64,000 bases of DNA from Klebsormidium nitens. Its lineage: Eukaryota; Plantae; Klebsormidiophyceae. A program made the translations under genes and the position numbers. Shown here piece after piece: positions 6,501 to 19,447 of this stretch. Location: positions 146,771 to 210,770 of the forward strand of contig DF237042.1 of NCBI GenBank assembly GCA_000708835.1, in the 5' to 3' direction. The notes under the pieces were generated by a model, which saw only the letters and a list, made by a program, of their open reading frames with translations, was not told the origin of the DNA and made no database searches. Position 1 is the stretch's first letter; each line of letters starts with the position of its first letter.

Positions 6501-8189
6501 CTGCCTGATGTCATCAAGGAATGACTGAAACAACAAGGCATGTAAAGTGAAAGAACAAATATCGGACAGAGGCTCCGATTGTAGCATGCGGCGTTTAAAT
6601 CTTTTCAGGACTTTAACCATGGGAAGCTTTATCCAAGAATCTCCTGATTCTGATGACTTTCAGCTGTGCAGTGCTTCTTTACTGAAGGGCCAGGATCCCG
6701 CTGGAAGCACAGTCATCCAACCATTGCTTCATTGTCAGATGGCCGATCTTTAATTAGTCCCAAAGACGAGCGCTGAGCCTAATGGGAGAGTCATGTACAC
6801 AGGCTGACTGCCGAAAGGCCTTGGTGTGACGAACTCTTCCAGAGGATACTGTGCCGATTGTGGGGCTGAAAGGCGGAGGTTGTTCCAACAAGGCCCAGCG
6901 TTTCGTAGCTCTGCTTCGTCAGAGCCAGGTGGAGCTTGCCTGAAAGGGGATGCAAATGAAGGAACGGGGTCAGATCCGGGATCAAACTTCCCAGTTGACG
7001 CGACGACTGAAAGGGAAGGACTTGGATCGTGGTTGCCTAAATTACCTGTTTTGGGAAGTAGGACGGAAAATGTCTACTCTCGAAAGATGAAGAGAGGCAT
7101 TTCTGATTGGCAAAGCTTCTTGACTTTTGAAAAGACGATGATTAACAAGTGACATTCATTTCCCCACAGAAGATCTAAGTTGGCCAAACCTTTACAGCAG
7201 GCCTAGAAGAAGCCATTGAGTCGGCTTTTTGTAGGACAGGTAAGTGCTTAGACATCTTCTTATGGTGCTTCCTTGTCGTGGCATGCCGGTGATTTCAGCA
7301 GAAACAAAGCTGGTAGAAACACTCACCGTCAGGGGAGACAGTGGCAGCATCTGTGCGGTCGATCGGGGTAGCATTTGAGATGGCCACAAACTCGGCCGCA
7401 CTCTTGACATAGGTTGATACAAAGTGGGGGCTCACAAAGGTGCTGAGAGGGGCTCGGAAGCCCTGGAAGAAAGGCTGGGGGGTTCCGAGGGCGTCGGTGT
7501 TTGTAATGACGAGCTGTGATAGGGGCAAGAAAACAGAGGGCTTGAATTGGAATTGCGTGAGCTGTGTCTGATCAGATGTATGTATGGATGCGAGAATGTG
7601 GCGCCTGACTGATGAATGCTGGCGACAGAAACTTCACGTCCTAGGAGAAGTATAATTTGTGCGATCGATAGAAGCAAAGGAGAGATCACAAAAGGCTGGA
7701 GACATTGCACCGTGATTTGAATTGGCCATCACAAGCCTGGCTGGTGGTAGAGCTCAGACGTCTCTAGACAGCCACAAGCTGGCAAGGGAGTCTGTGCTCC
7801 AAACGGAATGGCAGGTCACACGTTTCAGACTGGTGCGTTCCGAGGCACAACTAGCGCCAGCTTGCCGCGATGAAGACAATCAGGTATTATCAAGTAGCAT
7901 TCTGATTGACTGCTCTTTCAAACCACCAGCAGCAAGCATATGAACTGGGAAGAGCAGCATTTCAGGTCACATTCAAGCTGAGGCCAAGGTGGAGAAAGGC
8001 AGACATATGTACCTGCTTGGAGTCGCTGCCTGGCAGAACTGGCAGCAGAAGCTCCATGGCATTGTTGAAGGGGTGGTTGTGTACGTAGTTGTCAATGTCA
8101 GACTTGGGATGGTCAAAGCAAGATGACCTCACAACTAGCCTTGGAGCTGGCGGGGCACCTTTGCTCCCCGTTCCGTCATGACGGGGCAT
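3526..8189 (-). CDS. RPP40: RNase P/MRP protein subunit p40, multi-exon; last exon below 3526 not resolved
   Basis: Exon 8013-8189: MPRHDG...RLVVRSSCFDHPKSDIDNYVHNHPFNNAMELLLP. Exon 7327-7513: FVSTYVKS...TPIDRTDAATVSPDG. Near 6939: KLHLALTKQSYETLGLVG. Near 5400: LHEWLGAVACG. Exon 4696-4869: WTGLIAPSQV. Exon 4047-4113: VPWAALTVWGFADAP. Exon 3526-3620: VSWYGAEHGYAHSGENDYSLV. Order and motifs match RPP40; the junction phases checked were consistent. Confidence 0.88.
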
Positions 8190-8620
8190 GGTGCTGCAAC
8201 TTACTGCCACCACAGTACAATCGAAGTTTGATAGAGTCAACAACGCCCTCTGTTGTTCCACCAAAAGGAGTTCACCATTGGCGATGCTACTCGGGCACCT
8301 TTTCTTGACAACTCTCAAACCTCTCCAACACGCCCTTCTGTCGCCATGGCTTGTGCACTTGGAAAAATGTGCTGATCAGTACGGTATGATACCATGAATC
8401 AAATTCAAAGCCTTTTCAAGTGAAGAGCGCCTGCCTGTCGTTGTTCCGCCCTTCCATGCGCCAGAGCCGTTCCGCCGGACTCAAACGGGGTATCCTAACC
8501 GTCCGATGATATAGTAGTGGAAATCAACGGTGCCGATGCGACGATAGTCGTTACTGCACAGGTAAACTTTCTGTGCAGCCTTTCAGGTCAGCTTCGCAGT
8601 CTGTGCAGTCACACGAGACG
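8190..8620. promoter_or_regulatory. Putative bidirectional promoter between RPP40 and XRCC1
   Basis: Start codons 431 bp apart in head-to-head orientation; no specific motif demonstrated. Confidence 0.5.
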
Positions 8621-11600
8621 ATGGCAGACAGGAGGCGGTCATCGGCTCTTCCAGAGAAGGCTGCGTTGTCCGTGCATGCTTTTTCCTCGGAGAATGGGGT
8701 CCACAAGGCCAGCAATGTGGTGCTTGACGTCCTCTACAGGTGAGTTTCCTTGCAAAAGTTGCTCGCTCTTTGGTAGTGTGATCCCAAATTACATTACATC
8801 TCTGTTCAGCAGGTTTCTGGCATTCATGATGGTGGTGGAATTAGGCACATGCACTTGGAATAGACGTGATTTTAAACTCAAAAAAGCCCAGTAGGTCTCT
8901 GTGTCCATAGGCTTATCCCTCAGCACTAAAACTTGTCGTGCCTTCCATGAATTGACCATGATATGGCACTGGACTCAATCAGATCAAGCCAGGCTTGACA
9001 TGTCGTAGTCCCCTCCTGCTTACGTACCTAGTATTTACTGGAACACAACGTTCCACTGTCAACTGTACTTAGCCACGTTCTGCCACATACCAACTTTACT
9101 TAGCCGCGTACTGCCACATTATCTTCTTAGAAAATGAGACGAAATTACCACCTGGCCCAGCCGCCCCAGAATGTACACAATCCACCTTCTGGTTTCACGT
9201 GTCAAAGTGTGGGTGAGTTGGTCAATGAATGGTGGTGCTTCTGTGACACAAGCCCCCCAACCTCAACACAGTAATTTGTATAGTGCGCCTGGTGAATTGA
9301 GCTTGAGCTCAGGCCCCAATTCAACGTGCTTGAGATGTACTTCTGTTAGTTTGTTACCTGCCGACGTAACTCTTGCTCTTACTCATATTCTGTATGCTCC
9401 CTTATTACAGGCAGTGGCAAACAAACGGTCCTACAGACTCTGCCTGGATCTCAATCGATCTGGACCCTCCGTCCGGCATCCAACGGCTGGCACTCAACAA
9501 TTCTGGGAGTGCGCTTGTTGAGGCATATGGGTTGCAGGAGGGGGCTTCGGAAGAAGATGATGGCATCAGCGGTGACGTCAGCGGTTTTGAGATGCTGTTG
9601 CCAGCTCAGCAGTTCATGTCCGCTGCAGACGTGCGCGAGAAGAAGAACACCAACAGGGAGTTTGTGTACGAAGCGGGAACCAAGTTGCTGAAGTGAGCTG
9701 GTGTGACTGGCCTGAAATAGCTGACATCTCAAACTTTGCCCACCATGCTGAATAGTTGCGGTAATCAAGCGAACGGCCTTCAGATGTGCACTACTACTTT
9801 TCTTGTGACAATTTCGCTTTTTGCGGCGGATTGTTTTTGATCAACAGACTTGATGTCCTTAGGCCCACTTGAAAGCGATCCATTCTGGCTGAGCCCAGGA
9901 AGGTCCATCTACTTCAGCCCCCCAATTTGAGAACGCAATCGATCTGATCCGTCTTGTGCTTGAAAGCGACCGTTTCTCCTCCCTCTCTTTCTCATCAGTA
10001 ATATTGCCCAGAGATTCTGTGATGTTGAGCCAAAATGTCTCCACCGTCACAAGTTTCCCAGCCGTTCTTAGATACAACCCGCAGCTTGATGATCCTTTCA
10101 TGCTGCTCTGCCCTATCGTCGCTTGTACGCAGGGACGTGTTCAACTACAACTGTCTGAACAAATTTTGAATCAAGAAATTCATTCAGGCCCCAGCTGCCT
10201 GTCCTTGACCGTTGCTTCTCCATTCTTTGCAGGGCCGCAGCCGAACACAAGTGGCAGCGGCTGAAGCTCGTCTGTAAACAGCCCTTTGGAGCGCCGGAGG
10301 AGCCTATTGGGCTCGCACGAGTCAGAGTAAGCGCTCCACTCCTCGAAAGTCAATTGGCGGCTTTGTACCCGCTGATTCGAAGTGTTGGTCAGAACAGACC
10401 GTCACACAAAATGTTAGACCACAAACGCTTCGCTAGTTCCTCATATCAAACAGGACCACAATGTTCACAAAGGGCAAAGCACCAGACCGTTTAAGAAGGG
10501 CAAAGTTCGTAAAAGATTCTCCTAGAGGGTACGGAGGGCCTAAAAGCGGACTCGAGATTGGCCTTGACCGGCCGAAGCATGCCCCTAATGCTATAGAGCC
10601 GTTTGGGGTTGCAGGTGTTCCCGTGCAAGACCCCTGCCGAAGAAGCCGCAACAAACCGGCACGCTGCTCGGGAAGCCAAGATCCAAGCGGTAAGGGTTCT
10701 TTGCATTGCGGCATACGTAATCGCCGTTAAACTAAGGAGGGGTGAGTGCTTGAAGGGGATTGCCGTTATTAGAATTGAACATTGTTAAAGCCTACTTTTC
10801 AGGTTCTTGAGGAGGCGATTCCGCTGTTTCATCGTGGACGATCAGGGAGTCTCAGACATAAGATCCGTAAACAGACGTGACAATTCTGTGGCTCGTCTAG
10901 ATTCTACAAATACGCTTTCCCACAGTCATTAGCTTCAGCTGATTGAGACACCGCCGCTGTGCTTTTTGCACATGATCAGCCGATTCCTGTTTGGTTCTCT
11001 CATCCGGAACGGGAAGGGTTCGAGACCTCGACTTGAGCTCAATTTTCGAATCGCCAAGCGCCTCACTTTGCGCAAGACGGACTCCAGCTGATCGAGCTCA
11101 AACCCTGATGACGGTGCACACAAATCTACTGACGTGTTTGGAATAGAGAAAGAAAATATATCTTTCTTTCAGCAGGCGGTCGCTGATTCCGACAATCACC
11201 AGAAAAAGCCGCCCCCACCGTCGTTTCAAATGCCCCTCGCCAAGCTGTCAGACGAGCCCGCTGACCTGGCGGACCCGCCGCCGAGGGATCCCCCAAAGCC
11301 GAGGGATCCCCCGAAGCCCACCGGTAAACGCGTCCTCCCGAGCTGGCTCTCTGGCTCGCCCTCAAAGCTCGCTAGCGGTTCCAGAGGTGGGGAGAGAGGG
11401 ACGAAACGGGGCGCGGATGAGGGCCAGGAGAGAGATGCAAACAAGGCAAAGAGGGGGCAAGATGGCCGTGAAAGGGAGGGGGAGAAAAAGGAGCGGAAAG
11501 AGGTGGAAAGCAAAGAGCGCGGAAAAGGGGGCAAAAGCAGAGGCGGGAGGCATTCTTTTGCGAAGGAAAGCGACGATGAGGAGGAATGGGAGGAACCGAG

Positions 11601-13906
11601 CGCAAGGGCAAAAGAAGAGAAGGGGCGTTCTCCGAAAGGAACTAGAAAGGCGAGGGCGCCAACGCCGTCTGACGAGGAAGGCGGATCCGATGCAGACCCG
11701 GCATCCGGTCCGTCCAAGCGGAATGGCGAAACTGGAGGGGGGCCCAACGGCGCGAAAGTGCCTTTTGAAAAGTTGCTAGACGGAGTGACGTTTGCAATCT
11801 CGGGGATCCAGAATCCGGAACGGGGAAAGATTCGTGAGCAGGGGGAAGAGATGGGGGCCAAGTATAGGGGCGACTGGGGGGGGGAGTGCACGCTGCTGGT
11901 TTGCGCGTTTAAGGGGACGCCCAAGTTCAACCAGGTAAGGTTGACGTCTTATGAGTTGCAAATTATGTCAAATCGGTTTCAACCCTTCAAGTCCTTTATT
12001 GGTTCGTAGGGAACGGCCAACCGGTATTCACCCTCGAAGGTCAGGCTTTATGCGCGTTGCCAAGGGTTTTACTTTGTGGCCACCAAAGAGCACCAAACCT
12101 CGGGGCAAGTGGCAGGAAAGGGGCAGTATCTTTGCATTCCACTCCCGGTCGAAAACTTACATTTGCCTGGAAATTCAATTTCCAGGCCCTGAAGACCCTT
12201 TTGGAAGCAGATTCCGGTGTTCTGGGATGCAAGCTGCGCGATTTCGTCAGAAGCTTCGAACGCGGCCGGTCGGCATACTTCTAAACAAAAGTATGCGAAA
12301 GTTTTGTTTCGGAATGCACATATAACGAGCTTGTTGTGCTGAATTCTATCGAACACACAATCCGAGCCGGTGGACAGAGGTACTGCGGGCTTCTCTTCTT
12401 GCGATTGAAGCGCATGCCGTTGTACGAGGCGTTTGAGACGTTCAAACCTGATAGGCTGGTTGCGTCGTGGACATCTGGATTTCGACGGAATGTAATGGAA
12501 GTACCAATGCTCCACGTTCAGGGTCAAGAAGTTGCCTTCTTCGGTCGTGGGTGTGTCTGCTTTAACACTTCGACACAAATCGCCCTTCCAAATCAAACCG
12601 CCTGCCTGAGAGACGGGAGTTCATGAATTGACATTCTTGGGATCAGATTTTGAGATCCTGCTGTTGGCTCCGTCGACGTTCGACAATCTGGTCAGTCGCT
12701 AGACGATTGTCGTGACTGAGCTTGTGGCGTTGGGGGTTCACTAGGTGACGGTGTGCGTGCAGCCAGATTCAGAAGCACAACAGAGCTGCACATCACACTG
12801 CTGTTGCTCACAAAAACACTTAAACCAAACCTCCCGTCAGGTTTTACCGTAGTAAAAGTGTGGCGGCTTGAAGAATGTGACCAACGCTCGAGTGCAGGCA
12901 ACTCCGAGGACGCGCACCAGAACAGAACCTTTTTTCAGCGTGGATCATGTGATCAATTCCGCAGGAAGTTGAGTCATGCCCTTGCAGCACCTAGAGTCAT
13001 GCCCTCTTGCAACTTGCTCCATAACTGCAGGTCAAGAAGGCAAACGGAACGATTGTCGACCGAAAGTGGATCCCCGAGTGCCACAACCGGCGGGAGTTGG
13101 TGGATATCGACGAGCATCTGTTGCACCCGGGAAAGCCCTGGCGGAAGCAAACCGGGCAGAGCTTGGACGAAGGTCCGGCGGAGGAGGTGGCGCCGGAACG
13201 GGCGGAAGAAGGAAATGGAGGAGCGGAACGGAATGTTGCAGGGCGGAACGAGCAGAGCCGGACAGGAAGAGGGAGGGCGAAAGGAACGACGGAGGAGGAA
13301 ACGAAACCGCTGCGGGTTTCGTCTGGCAGAACTAGGGGCAGGGGGAACGGAAGGCGGGAAGGTCTGGGGTCCGTGACGGATGCTGACGTGGCGGGTTGGG
13401 TCACTGCTGACGTGGCAGCTGCGGAGCGGTTCTTGGAGGGGGAGGGGGCGGAGCCGGGGCCAGGGGAGACGATGCGCGAGTTGGGCGTGCAAGGCGTGCT
13501 GAGCTGTTTTGACTTTTTGGTGGAAGAACTAGAAGAGGGCCGAAGTTTGGAGGAAGCGAAAGATGGCTGGGTGGCTTCGCTCCCTCAGGGTATTGAGGTG
13601 GTTTGCGAGCAGGCAGATGGGAGTGCAGATTCGGCAATCTCGTTGTTGCAAGAAATGAAGGGTAGATATGAAAAAGCGCTGCAAAGCGAAATCAATGGGT
13701 TGAAATCAGGCAACCTTATGAGTACTGAGGAACGTGAGCAAGCCGAGGATGGAGACTCGGATGCAGAGACGGAAGCTATAGCGGACGAAGGGACTGAGGG
13801 CGACGTTGAGTCCGATGTGCTCATTTTGACGAGGCAAGAGATTGCGGCCGCCAAGCGAAAACTTGTCAAGGAATATGGTGGCGCGCGCGCGGGACTCTTG
13901 ACATAA
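8621..13906 (+). CDS. XRCC1: DNA single-strand break repair scaffold XRCC1: NTD + linker + BRCT-I + plant-type C-terminus; exons 8621-8739, 9411-9692, 10233-10326, ~11173-11934, 13031-13906
   Basis: NTD: VHAFSSENGVHKASNVVLDVLYR|QWQT...LALNNSGSALVEAY...FEMLLPAQQFMSAADVREKKNTNR...K|AAAEHKWQRLKLVCKQPF. BRCT: LLDGVTFAISGIQNPERGKIREQGEEMGAKYRGDWGGECTLLVCAFKGTPKFNQ|VKKANGTIVDRKWIPECHNRRELVDIDEHLLHPGKPW. GT-AG junctions keep frame. Confidence 0.93.
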
Positions 13907-14280
13907 CGCCCTTCAAAAATAATCACAAGGTCGCTGCGGTTTGCCAGATTCCGTTAACGGTACTAATCCTTTCTGCTCAATTGAGTGCACGTTGTCACTC
14001 AGTTGTGTCGCTCGGCAAGTTTGAAGTGTGTCAAGCAGACTTGCGTGGGTCCATTTGAGTTTTACTCCTTTCGACCGCGTTAAATGTTCGTGAATCCGCA
14101 ACGTTTCATAAATTAATAATTGCGCGTCAGCAGGCGCCACTTACAAATCTAGAGGATAGCAAATCAGAGCTAGATAGATTTTGAGAATACGGTGGCCGCG
14201 CCTGTCCCTAAATAGTGCTGGCCGCGCGGGTCATTATTCAATGATTGCGCCAGCGGAACGGGGCCAGCAGCCTGAGTTTT

Positions 14281-14462
14281 ATCATGGTTCCAATATGTAA
14301 ACCGGCCGGGCGGCTTCATAGTACAAATGATTCAGTCTAACATGCATGTTGACCGTTGGCATCTTCATGCCATGAACCAGTGTGCGTTTCTGCCGCCAGC
14401 TAAAGTCTCTGGCACATGTCGAGATCATGGATTGCACCGGCCAACCCTTTAAACCTTCATGG
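14281..14462. other. CATG-dense intergenic island between convergent XRCC1 and GT92 3' ends
   Basis: Hand count 8 CATG in about 180 bp. Confidence 0.55.
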
Positions 14463-14786
14463 TACGTAATTTCAACGTGACGGGGCCTGCGATAACGGTT
14501 GACGAGACGCGTATGGGCGCTGTGTCGAGCCGAGCTGCCATTCAAGACTCAGAATTAGGGTATCTTACAATTGAGCCAGTTCAGAAGGGAGCATCATACT
14601 ATGATACGCAACTGATAGCGTGTGCATGCCTGTCCTGGATCAGTCGTGCATATGCCGGTTATAACACGAGGCTGCGGTTACCTGAATTGCATCTACTTTG
14701 CGACTGTGCATCGGTGCCTAAAACGAATTCAAGCCATTTTTGGTGTCCAGAAACAGACCCCTTGCTCCGCGTTTGAGCGCTCATCA

Positions 14787-17700
14787 TCAAAGGCTGAATT
14801 CGTTTGCTTTCTGGTCAACAACGCCTCTATATTCGTCGACGAAGCAATCCAATCCACTCCCTTCCAACGTTACGTTATAACTGTCAGTTGTGTAATAACT
14901 TGGATTCGGGCGATTCTTCCGGCAATGGGCAATCTGGACGCCCTCTTCAGAACAGAAGGGTTTTATTCCCTCTTCAAGGGGTTCAAAGTCTTTGACTTCA
15001 TGATTAAACATTTCCCGAGCCTGCAAGACAAGAAGTGTAAGCTTGAGTTACTTGGACCATCTCTGCAAAATTTCACACTTCGAAAACGTACATCCGGACC
15101 TCGAACGTGTCAAATCATTCCGATCCAATCAAAACCCACTGATCATCTCAAACCAGTCGCGCTGATCAGATTAGACCTGTTGCCAAACAGCTTTTCAAAG
15201 TGAGATACTTTTGCTGTCAAGAGACCCAAACGACTGCCAAGCCCATCATTATTCCCATTATGGATCTGGACGGAACGAGTTCATGATTTTAGCTCGGAGT
15301 CCCAACACCAAATGAAAGAGTTATATGAAATGGAGACACATCCGTGTCCTCACCAGTAATTTTCTGATCAGTCAAACGGCTCTAGTAATGGGCAGGGTAG
15401 GAGAGAATGCACCACACTGTGAAAAGGCACCCATAGTCAGCGAGATGAAGCTTGCACTGCTTCCGCTTCCTCTGAACTCTTCGTAACACAGAAAGGTACT
15501 GTGCGGAATCGCCTTTCTGACAAGAGGACAACCTTACCAAGAGTGGTTGTAGGATAGTCTTCAGGAACTGAGGACTTTTATGCGTCTTCCGTCTGCACCG
15601 ATCGATAACTAGATCGGAGGCGGCCTCCTCTTCAGCCGGTAGGAAAGGATACTCAGGGGTGACGAATGTGGCGCAATGGTTCTTCTCCGCGAGGATTTGA
15701 GGAAGGGTCTTCTCGATCTTGCAGTCCCTCATGTTCGGTATCAGGTAGTCGTCCAAGTCGAAGAACATGAGCCATCTGCACGTTAACAAAATCGGTTTTA
15801 TTCTTCGCAGGATTACTACGTATACTTTATAGATCTCCGGAATCATCAGCAGCTGCTACCCACGAGAGTATAGTTCCCAAAAACAACCGCCCACTTCCTG
15901 CCAACATCTGATTGTACTTGAGATTAACATTGACACGGACACCGGATTCATGAGAGGGCAGTGTCATTGCTCAAGCCGGCATCCTAGACTAACCTGAGCT
16001 AACCTGCTAACCAGCCAAACCGAGATTCGAACCCGAGCTTCAACCCGAAAGGCTGCACCTTGGGCCTACCCGCGAAAAAGGACGCTAATACTATGCTCAT
16101 CTTGAGCGAGGTCAGTTAAATTCACAATTTCTACATGCATTAAACCGCAGAACCATACTTTGAAACTTCGTGACCGGACGGTTTTTTCCCCGCGAAAGTT
16201 CGGAAGCAGTTGCTTCGAAGGAAGTTGCCTCCAAGCGAAATGCGAAGCATGGGGACTCAGGAGACTCGGTTTCAGTAGGCAGAAGCGCACTTACTTTGAG
16301 GAATGCTTGTTGGTCTGGAGACAGTGGTTGTACACCTGATACTGTCAATCACAAAGAAACACGATGTCAATCCCTGAAGCCTTGAAGCCTCCGTAGGAAA
16401 GTCTCAAGGTAAAAGCCACATATAGGACTAGAGCATGGCTGAGGAGAAATGCTTTTGCGCAGTTCTCCTCAGTTAATCTCAGTTAATCTCTCAATTAATC
16501 CTCTCCTCAATGAAAGGTGCCGCCTTTCCATCAGAAGTCGTGACGGATTCTTTGAGAATGATGCAGTTCGAGGGTTATCACTACCTATAGGCCAGGTCAT
16601 TCGCTCGTCGTATGTGACATCGGCAAGACCCGTTTGAGATCTTCGTTGAGGTGTCTTTCGACAACGACGGTGCTCATGATTGCTTTCCTGCAGATGGCCC
16701 TCGTTCTAGTTTTAACTGGCAGTGACGACTCAATGACGGTTTGACTCTGGGATAACTCATGTACGCTTCCTTCCAACTCTCCTGGCCCCAAGGAAATCAG
16801 CGGAAATACCACATCTTTAAGCCTGAACTCAGCAGTCTAAGACAAAGAGGGTGCTCACCAGATCGTAGACGTTGCCGAACCTATTCTTCAGCGTTTCATC
16901 GTCGGTTGACGTAAACCACCGGCGAAACGTCACAAGGTCGGGGTACAGCTTGAAAAGATCATCAGGAACGTCCTTCCGACCGTAGATGAAAAAGTGCTCG
17001 ACGCCATGAACGCGATGGTAGAACTCAATGTGCTCAATCCAGGCCCTAGGCTTGAAGTGATCTCGTCCGTATATCGGCCCGATGCAAGCCGAGAGAAACC
17101 TGCAGGAAAAGGTGGCGAGCGCGATATAGAACACACTAGCTTCAGTCGATGCAGGTTTCGGCAGTGGGGTGTGCCTAGGTCTCAATTGCGCGACTTGTCC
17201 TTTCAACCTTTTCGTTTCGATCGTCTCGTTTCGGGATCTTTCCGGAACTTCTTTCCTGCATCTCAAAGCGAACTGTTACCGTCTGGCTACAACGATGCAA
17301 GCCAGAGCTTTTACTCTTGAGTGATCTAGTTGAGATATTCTTGCAGCAGCCGTCTGTTTCTCAGTACTTAGAATCTGCAGAACCCGCGGATCTGGAGGCC
17401 TACAAGATTCCTCAGGCGAAAACTCTACGGTTGAAACGATATCGCGTTGCATTGCAGTGCACATAATTGTGTGCAATCACCGGCTCCGACTTTTCCTTAT
17501 TTTGATTTTCCTGACCAGGGTCTCAACGGCTTTTGGCGACTCGCGTGGCCATCCTTTGCACTGGACAAAACACGCAATCTGGATGGATAGATGTAAGGCC
17601 TTCTCAACGTGACACAATTAGCAGAGGACTTACCGCTGCTTCTCTTTGAGGGGCCCCCTTTCAAACGCAAGGGTGAAGCTCAGAGTGGAGGGCGGTACAA

Positions 17701-19447
17701 TGGTTTTCGAGGCAATCTCGAGGGTTGCTTTCAGCGACTGCAAGAAACCAACAGCAGTATCTGCAGACGGTTCTTCTCAAGACCAGTTTCAACGATGATC
17801 TTAAAAAGATAATATGTGCAAGAGAAGTTTCAGCGTCATACTTGCAGGTCGCATAGATCATAGACTGTTGGAACCGTGAGCGATTTTGGAAGAATATCAC
17901 GCCACAAGTATGAGTTTCCCGTTCACTTTCAATGATGCCTGAAAGGTGCAGCCTTTACAGGGGCAACAGTCAGACGAGGTGTGATACGTACTGTGTGGCA
18001 CCTTTTACATTCTTACTACCAGGATTATCTGCTCAGCGCTTGTGAGAATCGCTCTGCATTCCTTCTGATTGTTTGTCACCGTAGCAGCTGCATCATTGGC
18101 TGGCTTTTAGGTCTGATCAGACTGCCCCGAGGTAAAACTTCATCTAAGGAGAGGAGGAAGGTCTAAGTTAGAAGCAACTCACGTCATCTTCGGTCATGTG
18201 GTCCAAAAAGGCACTGGCATCCGTTGGCAAGGGGCACTCCAAGAACTGCGAGCTTAGATAGTCTGGCCCGTAGGTGAATGAACAAGCGAGCCGGCTCCAA
18301 GCTGCTCTGGATTGTGGGCTGCCAGAAAGGATGCGCCTGGATGTTTGCAGCAGGGCTTCTTTTGGATCTTGGGGAGAAGCCTGGACAAAAAGGTACCATC
18401 TTGGAAAGGGCTTTTTTTGGATCTTGGGGAGAAGCCTGGCTCGAAAAGGGGAAAAGGGTATCATCTTGGAAAGGGCTTTGACTTGATTGGAGTCCGGAGA
18501 AGGGCTTTGACTTTGACAATTGGGTAGGAAGGGTGGGGTTTTGAGGCCAATTGCTGAGGTCGACTCTGCAACAGTGTGCTTCAGAAAAAACCACATCATA
18601 AGCTTCTGACGCCGTAATGGCACTCCAAACCTGGCTCATAGTATTGAAACTAATCTGGACACAAGCTTGACTGGACAATGAGTAGAGGCCTAGATTATTG
18701 GTTATCAACCATGCCTCAGTGCAACTTTTCAATCGTCTCCTGAGACTTACAAAAGACTACAATCCGAGCCCATTATGACCATTCACAGGACAACCAGGAA
18801 AGCTGTACTGGGTAGACCGTCACAGGTAACTGGCAGGAATAGCCTTTTTTTGAATGTCGTTAGGAGGATGCTCCCCTCACCTCCAGGCTCAACCGCATGT
18901 CCATTTCCCAAGTCTTGTTGCTCATACGCGCATGCTGTGGACAGCACCGCTCTGGGTTTTCATAGAACTCTAGAAAAATCTGGAAGCGTAAAATCCAGTT
19001 CCCTTTCCCAACAGGAACCTTCACGGGGGCCATGCTGAATATGAGCATCTCGTGGCCATAGATTTCATTCCAGGGCAACCGCAGGAAGTTCATGCCGTCT
19101 GTAGGGATGAGCTCCTTGATGGTAAGGCGATGCGCCAAAGAAGGAGCCGGAGGATTTGAAGTACCTGATTGCAACCTTTGCCTTACGCCAATCAATGCTT
19201 TTTGATCACGGGGATCCTGGTAAAGAAGCTGGGCAGTGAGGACCAACAAGCAGATCATGAGAACCAGGAGCGTTGCGGGTGTGACTTTGACTTTGACTGG
19301 CGTGCGAGGAGAAGAAGGAGATCCTGGACTGCTTATGCCCTCTTTACGTCCAATGTATGTTTTGCTCTTCCCTTCATCGGCCACTGTGCTGGAAAAACCT
19401 TGGCCAAACGAAGCGGCTGTCACATAAGGCTTGAGCAGAGCCTCCAT
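14787..19447 (-). CDS. Type II membrane glycosyltransferase, GT92/DUF23 family (galactan synthase-like fold), multi-exon; internal exon set only partly resolved
   Basis: N-terminal TM TLLVLMICLLVLTAQLL, then LACSFTYG...FLECPLP (~18180-18380), LSACIGPIYG...AWIEHIEFYHRVHGVEHFFIY (~16860-17130), and WLMFFDLDDYLIP with the DxD motif (~15740-15780). Last exon ends at stop 14787. Confidence 0.8.
18353..18480 (-). repeat. ~55-65-bp tandem duplication spanning a GT92 3' splice site
   Basis: Minus strand: ttttcgagccag/gcttctccccaagatccaaaaaaagccc upstream of tttttgtccag/gcttctccccaagatccaaaagaagccc; junctions at 18435 and 18380. Confidence 0.85.

Follow-up and report, generated by a model that had tools for sequence, protein, structure and literature searches.

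An N-terminal domain in XRCC1 of the alga Klebsormidium nitens, with the same domain order as in non-flowering land plants

XRCC1 has two textbook forms. The mammalian form carries an N-terminal domain (NTD; human structures 1XNA, 3K75 and 3K77), a first BRCT domain (BRCT-I; human BRCT1 structure 2D8M) and a second one (BRCT-II). Reviews describe XRCC1 of Arabidopsis and rice (At1g80420 and OsXRCC1) as having neither the NTD nor BRCT-II, and plants as devoid of Pol beta and Lig III (PMC10573277, PMC6728418); a preliminary description of the DNA studied here had stated the same, giving the lack of Pol beta and Lig III for flowering plants. We analysed a stretch of 64,000 nucleotides from Klebsormidium nitens (contig DF237042.1 of assembly GCA_000708835.1, positions 146,771 to 210,770 of the forward strand; hereafter "the window"), in which an XRCC1 gene of six exons and approximately 734 codons occupies positions 8621–13906 of the plus strand. 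In our overall reading, which we hold with good confidence, this gene encodes an NTD, BRCT-I and a plant-type tail, this layout is the usual one in non-flowering streptophytes, and the short Arabidopsis/rice form reflects a later loss.

The gene model was obtained by reading the region 8000–16500 of the window and translating candidate exons (Table 1). All five introns are of the GT..AG type with compatible phases; exon 1 ends in phase 2, and the final AA of exon 2 joins the G at 10233. Transcript evidence came from contigs mapped on 8400–14300, which derive from four sequencing runs and as many studies. The runs bear no RNA label on record; the contigs skip exactly the five predicted introns and therefore come from spliced RNA. 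Junctions 8739/9411, 9692/10233 and 10326/10615 and the exon 5 acceptor at 11176 were seen in these RNA-derived contigs, in all four runs for exon 1, exon 4 and the acceptor, and the exon 5/6 junction 11934/13031 was found in three of the four. Exons 1–5 were chained within single contigs of 1118–1260 nucleotides, one of which (X2 record 14) covers 8607–11825 and reaches the start of the BRCT. Exons 1–6 are transcribed and spliced as one mRNA. The three NTD exons lie where the preliminary description had placed them, with GT..AG introns and joined in frame; the splicing to BRCT-I and a plant-type C-terminus that it had proposed was confirmed by contigs and alignments, with the correction that the BRCT exon starts at 11176 and not at 11173.

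The long introns, and the splitting of exons into separate open reading frames (ORFs) by prokaryote-style gene callers in metagenome records, would fit a model in which the NTD exons are an upstream gene or transcript of their own and were joined to the BRCT only by an artefact of the gene model. This model was rejected because in four runs single spliced contigs start in exon 1, cross exons 2–4 and reach the BRCT in exon 5, and transcript-derived land-plant proteins likewise hold NTD and BRCT in one reading frame; we give it virtually no credence.

The identity of the NTD was examined by domain searches run exon by exon. Pfam XRCC1_N (PF01834) matched exon 2 with E = 1.4e-8 (35.4 bits, profile positions 32–110 of 148) and exon 3 with E = 1.6e-5 (25.4 bits, profile positions 119–146), each score being above the curated cut-off of 21 bits. 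Against solved structures, HMMER aligned exon 2 to residues 45–110 of human XRCC1 with E = 0.37, a match that is weak by itself, and exon 3 to residues 119–148 with E = 1.5e-4. These alignments reproduced the motif pairings claimed earlier: NSGSALVEAY of exon 2 pairs with human NDGSAFVEVL, FEMLLPAQQFMS with YEVLLVTSSFMS, and AAAEHKWQRLKLVCKQPF of exon 3 with AAAEKRWDRVKIVCSQPY. Exon 1 by itself gave no Pfam or Protein Data Bank (PDB) match. It was recognised as the start of the NTD through its match to the first part of plant XRCC1 NTDs (13 of 22 residues identical, E = 2e-7), and it corresponds to human residues of about 9–34. In an alignment with six land-plant NTDs (alignment A2: P0007, P0005, P0010, P0018, P0021 and P0023), the products of exons 1–4 tile the plant domain end to end without gaps, exon 4 aligning to its ...CKT.. 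segment.

The NTD of the homologue P0007 matched human XRCC1 9–147 with E = 2e-16, and its AlphaFold model (predicted local distance difference test score, pLDDT, 79) found its best matches in the human XRCC1 NTD structures 3K77 and 3K75 (template modelling score, TM, 0.72/0.81), with generic galactose-binding-like folds far behind. The algal protein accordingly holds a complete N-terminal beta-sandwich domain encoded by exons 1–4. The completeness claimed in the preliminary description thus stands for the domain, and its assignment to three exons does not, as the domain end extends into the fourth exon.

One BRCT of the BRCT-I type, split between exons 5 and 6, lies on the same polypeptide as the NTD. 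Exon 5 matched Pfam BRCT with E = 5.8e-6, and the only PDB match of its BRCT half was human XRCC1 BRCT1 (2D8M, E = 1.3e-14); the exon 6 half by itself gave no XRCC1 match in the PDB. For exon 6, alignments were obtained with the C-terminal regions of P0007, a fern-like homologue (E = 2e-18), and of a Ginkgo protein (E = 3e-14), and the motif at the end of the algal BRCT, GTIV..KWI.EC...LVDI...L.H.GKPWRK, is common to non-flowering land-plant XRCC1. A Pfam search of the 291-residue exon 6 product found no second BRCT at E values up to 1.

Table 1 Features of the Klebsormidium nitens XRCC1 gene, with positions in the window and amino-acid identity of each exon to relatives.
Feature	Position	Strand	Description	Identity to relatives
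5′ untranslated region (minimum extent)	8574–8620	+	RNA contig starts at 8574–8614	
Exon 1	8621–8739	+	Start codon ATG at 8621, the first in the open frame; opening strands of the XRCC1 NTD	64–85%
Exon 2	9411–9692	+	NTD core, with the NSGSALVE and FEMLLPAQQFMS strands	82–88%
Exon 3	10233–10326	+	AAAEHKWQRLKLVCKQPF...IGLARVR, last NTD strands	81–97%
Exon 4	10615–10689	+	75 nucleotides; NTD end (VFPCKTP...) and start of a short helix/linker	68–92%
Exon 5	11176–11934	+	Long, charged linker, then the initial half of BRCT-I (about 11764–11934)	41–72%
Exon 6	13031–13906	+	Second half of BRCT-I (GTIVDRKWIPEC...HPGKPWRK), plant-type C-terminal region, acidic tail; stop TAA at 13904–13906	52–71%
3′ untranslated region (minimum extent)	13907–14178	+	RNA contig ends at 14144–14178	

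Several further features of the gene and its transcripts were recorded. At the start of exon 5, two CAG acceptors lie in tandem (CAGCAG, 11170–11176), and every run uses the second, so that the exon begins at 11176; use of the first AG would give one extra Gln, and this alternative was seen in no contig of the four runs. Low-depth contigs over introns 2, 4 and 5 (9717–10175, 10853–11149 and 11920–12928; depth 2–8, compared with 20–55 on exons) are most simply explained as precursor RNA that had not been spliced. Three runs, each of a different study, contain a contig that follows the gene from 9566 (or 13404) onwards after approximately 255 letters of other sequence; these sequences were not found elsewhere in the window, and the joins may reflect a word shared with another locus or an assembly chimera. 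The linker contains the motif GKRVLPSW (11326–11346), for which most aligned land-plant XRCC1 proteins have K(R/K).LP.W. It may serve in nuclear localisation or in the docking of a partner, and no description of KRVLPSW was found. ORFs in intron 5 and upstream of the gene gave no family match, and no notable repeats were found within the gene.

The distribution of this layout in plants was investigated using the NTD as a query. An exhaustive HMMER search with exon 2 over 1.84 billion representatives returned 12 matches, including three full-length XRCC1 proteins (P0005, P0007 and P0010), each with a single BRCT and an XRCC1_N match of E = 1e-21 to 1e-26. Translated exon 2 is 41–46% identical to the NTDs of these three, one of which is the Diphasiastrum protein. 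Named plant proteins came from a word search with the P0005 NTD, which covered proteins of 354–1125 residues and needed short shared words. XRCC1_N together with a BRCT was present in proteins of the moss Ceratodon purpureus (KC19_8G185600), the lycophyte Diphasiastrum complanatum (O6H91_Y473900, a protein that stops just after the BRCT), the fern Adiantum capillus-veneris (GOP47_0010576) and the gymnosperms Ginkgo (Gb_38900) and Taxus chinensis (KI387_008944); for the gymnosperm Cryptomeria japonica (LOC131069288), only XRCC1_N is listed. An alignment of the named proteins revealed a common NTD, BRCT-I and, in the linker, the motif K(R/K).LP.W; a C-terminal region is common to all except the Diphasiastrum and Cryptomeria ones. 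Their database records carry the Pfam annotation under mostly generic names ("BRCT domain-containing protein", "hypothetical protein").

Judging from these sequences, XRCC1_N followed by one BRCT and a plant-type tail is the usual layout in the non-flowering streptophytes sampled, from Klebsormidium-type algae to gymnosperms. The preliminary description had seen in the alga an intermediate architecture, with the NTD lost within streptophytes. Taken as a special intermediate with an early loss, between streptophyte algae and land plants, this reading would fit the presence of the NTD in the alga and its absence from Arabidopsis and rice as given in the reviews, and is contradicted by the full-length XRCC1_N plus BRCT proteins of moss, lycophyte, fern and gymnosperms: the domain, which the description had expected to be uncommon in land-plant XRCC1, was found in every non-flowering group named. 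We consider such an early loss highly improbable.

The presence of XRCC1_N and a BRCT in all of these groups therefore places the loss of the NTD most likely on the branch to the flowering plants, at best on their stem or within them. Flowering plants were not among the named matches, an absence that, given the length range and the need for shared words in that search, is supporting evidence and not proof. Three other searches added nothing on this point: a profile word search with alignment A1 returned four already-known proteins, dominated by common words, and was uninformative on flowering plants; an exon 6 word search returned three close relatives only, owing to its length window; and ESM Atlas, queried with a homologue NTD, gave only animal XRCC1_N clusters and was uninformative on plants. 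It tells against a loss placed here that the absence of the domain in flowering plants is taken from the reviews of Arabidopsis and rice and from the lack of any angiosperm in a length-limited word search.

The "animal-type" label that the NTD had earlier received would also suit a horizontal transfer from an animal, or contamination. This origin was rejected, and we regard it as having next to no probability: the plant homologue NTD is only about 31% identical to the human one in the structural alignment, the NTD exons lie within a spliced gene with a plant-type C-terminus, and the domain occurs across streptophyte lineages.

Reviews have extended the lack of an NTD in Arabidopsis and rice to plant XRCC1 in general, and this generalisation fails for the Klebsormidium-type algae and for the moss, lycophyte, fern and gymnosperms of our sample. 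In our literature searches, no paper was found that mentions an XRCC1 NTD in any plant or alga. The result re-dates the loss of the NTD and reveals neither a novel type of protein nor a novel mechanism.

The whole gene was also found in close relatives. All six exons are kept in order in four Klebsormidium-like loci representing three distinct sequences, namely L001 and L002 (identical across the gene) and L003 from a Joint Genome Institute (JGI) metagenome, and L014 from a Logan assembly. In three more distant loci (L008, L011 and L013), the BRCT-I exon is likewise preceded by NTD exons. Per-exon Nei–Gojobori estimates between the window and L002 and L003 gave a nonsynonymous divergence (dN) of about 0.09 in exons 2–3 versus 0.32 in exons 5–6, and a ratio of nonsynonymous to synonymous divergence (dN/dS) of 0.07–0.11 in exons 2–3, where dS is near saturation. 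By these estimates, the NTD is the most constrained and slowest-evolving part of algal XRCC1. JGI metagenome 3300060284 holds two XRCC1 loci (L001, 2565–10876; L003, 1908–10870), which are 97% identical in the NTD and 82–87% in exons 5–6, and which come from two closely related Klebsormidium-like genomes or are two copies of the gene. Downstream of the L003 gene (17229–18814) lie two ORFs, the second of which (18095–18814) matches the reverse transcriptase family RVT_1; they are probably a retroelement.

The conservation of this domain raises the question of what binds to a Pol-beta-binding domain in lineages described as being without Pol beta. By comparison with mammals, algal XRCC1 would act as a scaffold for base-excision and single-strand-break repair. 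Its BRCT-I would recruit it to poly(ADP-ribosyl)ated PARP at breaks, as is inferred from mammalian XRCC1, and the strand face of the NTD that in mammals binds the palm-thumb of Pol beta (3K75) would hold a gap-filling partner or gapped DNA. In the mammalian protein, the substitution V86R is reported to abolish Pol beta binding (PMC2926592). Pol lambda would be the first candidate for the algal partner, because reviews describe it as the main X-family polymerase in plants and as the only one in most of them (PMC10573277, PMC6728418). In non-flowering streptophytes, the NTD might then tether Pol lambda, or else a Pol-beta-like enzyme that has escaped recognition, as the X-family polymerase that fills gaps in short-patch repair, a link lost in flowering plants. 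If this were true, plant base-excision repair would exist in two differently wired versions.

We put this tether forward tentatively and think it rather unlikely. Several points speak against such a partner. Pol beta is described as missing from plants (PMC10573277, PMC6728418); for the human proteins, a 2024 study proposed that Pol lambda uses its own BRCT domain to bind XRCC1, mainly at the central BRCT region and not at the NTD (PMC11241748); flowering plants retain Pol lambda yet manage without the NTD; and the conserved NTD residues could simply be the core of the fold. The first two points also favour an alternative in which the NTD has no polymerase partner and is a DNA-binding or purely structural module that would help the scaffold to recognise nicks and gaps, or would hold another repair enzyme, for example an apurinic/apyrimidinic (AP) endonuclease or ZDP. 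The human NTD binds nicked and gapped DNA (work cited in PMC11241748), and the strong purifying selection on the NTD argues that the domain has some function. However, conservation between plants and human is highest in the strands with the Pol beta contact residues, which is suggestive of a polymerase partner and not specific to one. A module with no polymerase partner is a serious possibility that still falls short of being probable.

Compared with human XRCC1, the alga has the same beta-sandwich NTD with the same order of segments, and the two share N.GSA.VE, (Y/F)E.LL....FMS and AAAE(K/H)(R/K)W.R.K.VC.QP(Y/F). In both, a charged linker follows, and then a BRCT-I clearly of the XRCC1 type. 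As aligned, the human contacts to Pol beta would be altered conservatively in the alga, with E69 kept, F67 replaced by Leu and V86 by Met. The alga differs in lacking BRCT-II, the Lig III partner, and in its C-terminal region, which is of the plant type. Cuneo and London reportedly described, in 2010, a redox switch formed by C12 and C20 of mammalian XRCC1; both cysteines are absent in the alga, where Phe and Lys stand at those columns. In all six land-plant NTDs of alignment A2, the C-IGL segment (CIGLS) holds a Cys and, before IGL, two inserted residues, and in four of the six SCSSE contributes a further Cys; the alga has none of these three features. The partner Cys of the mammalian switch occurs in none of the sequences of alignment A2.

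Like Arabidopsis and rice XRCC1 as reviewed, the alga has a single BRCT-I and no BRCT-II, and by analogy it would play the same repair-scaffold role. The flowering-plant protein is, by its published description, approximately half as long and lacks the NTD (PMC10573277), whereas the alga has an expressed one. The non-flowering land-plant proteins show the same domain order as the alga, namely XRCC1_N, the K(R/K).LP.W linker, one BRCT and a plant-type C-terminal region (Diphasiastrum excepted), with linkers that vary widely in length. Algal XRCC1 is an orthologue of a well-known protein with a layout unlike both textbook forms, that of animals and that of flowering plants.

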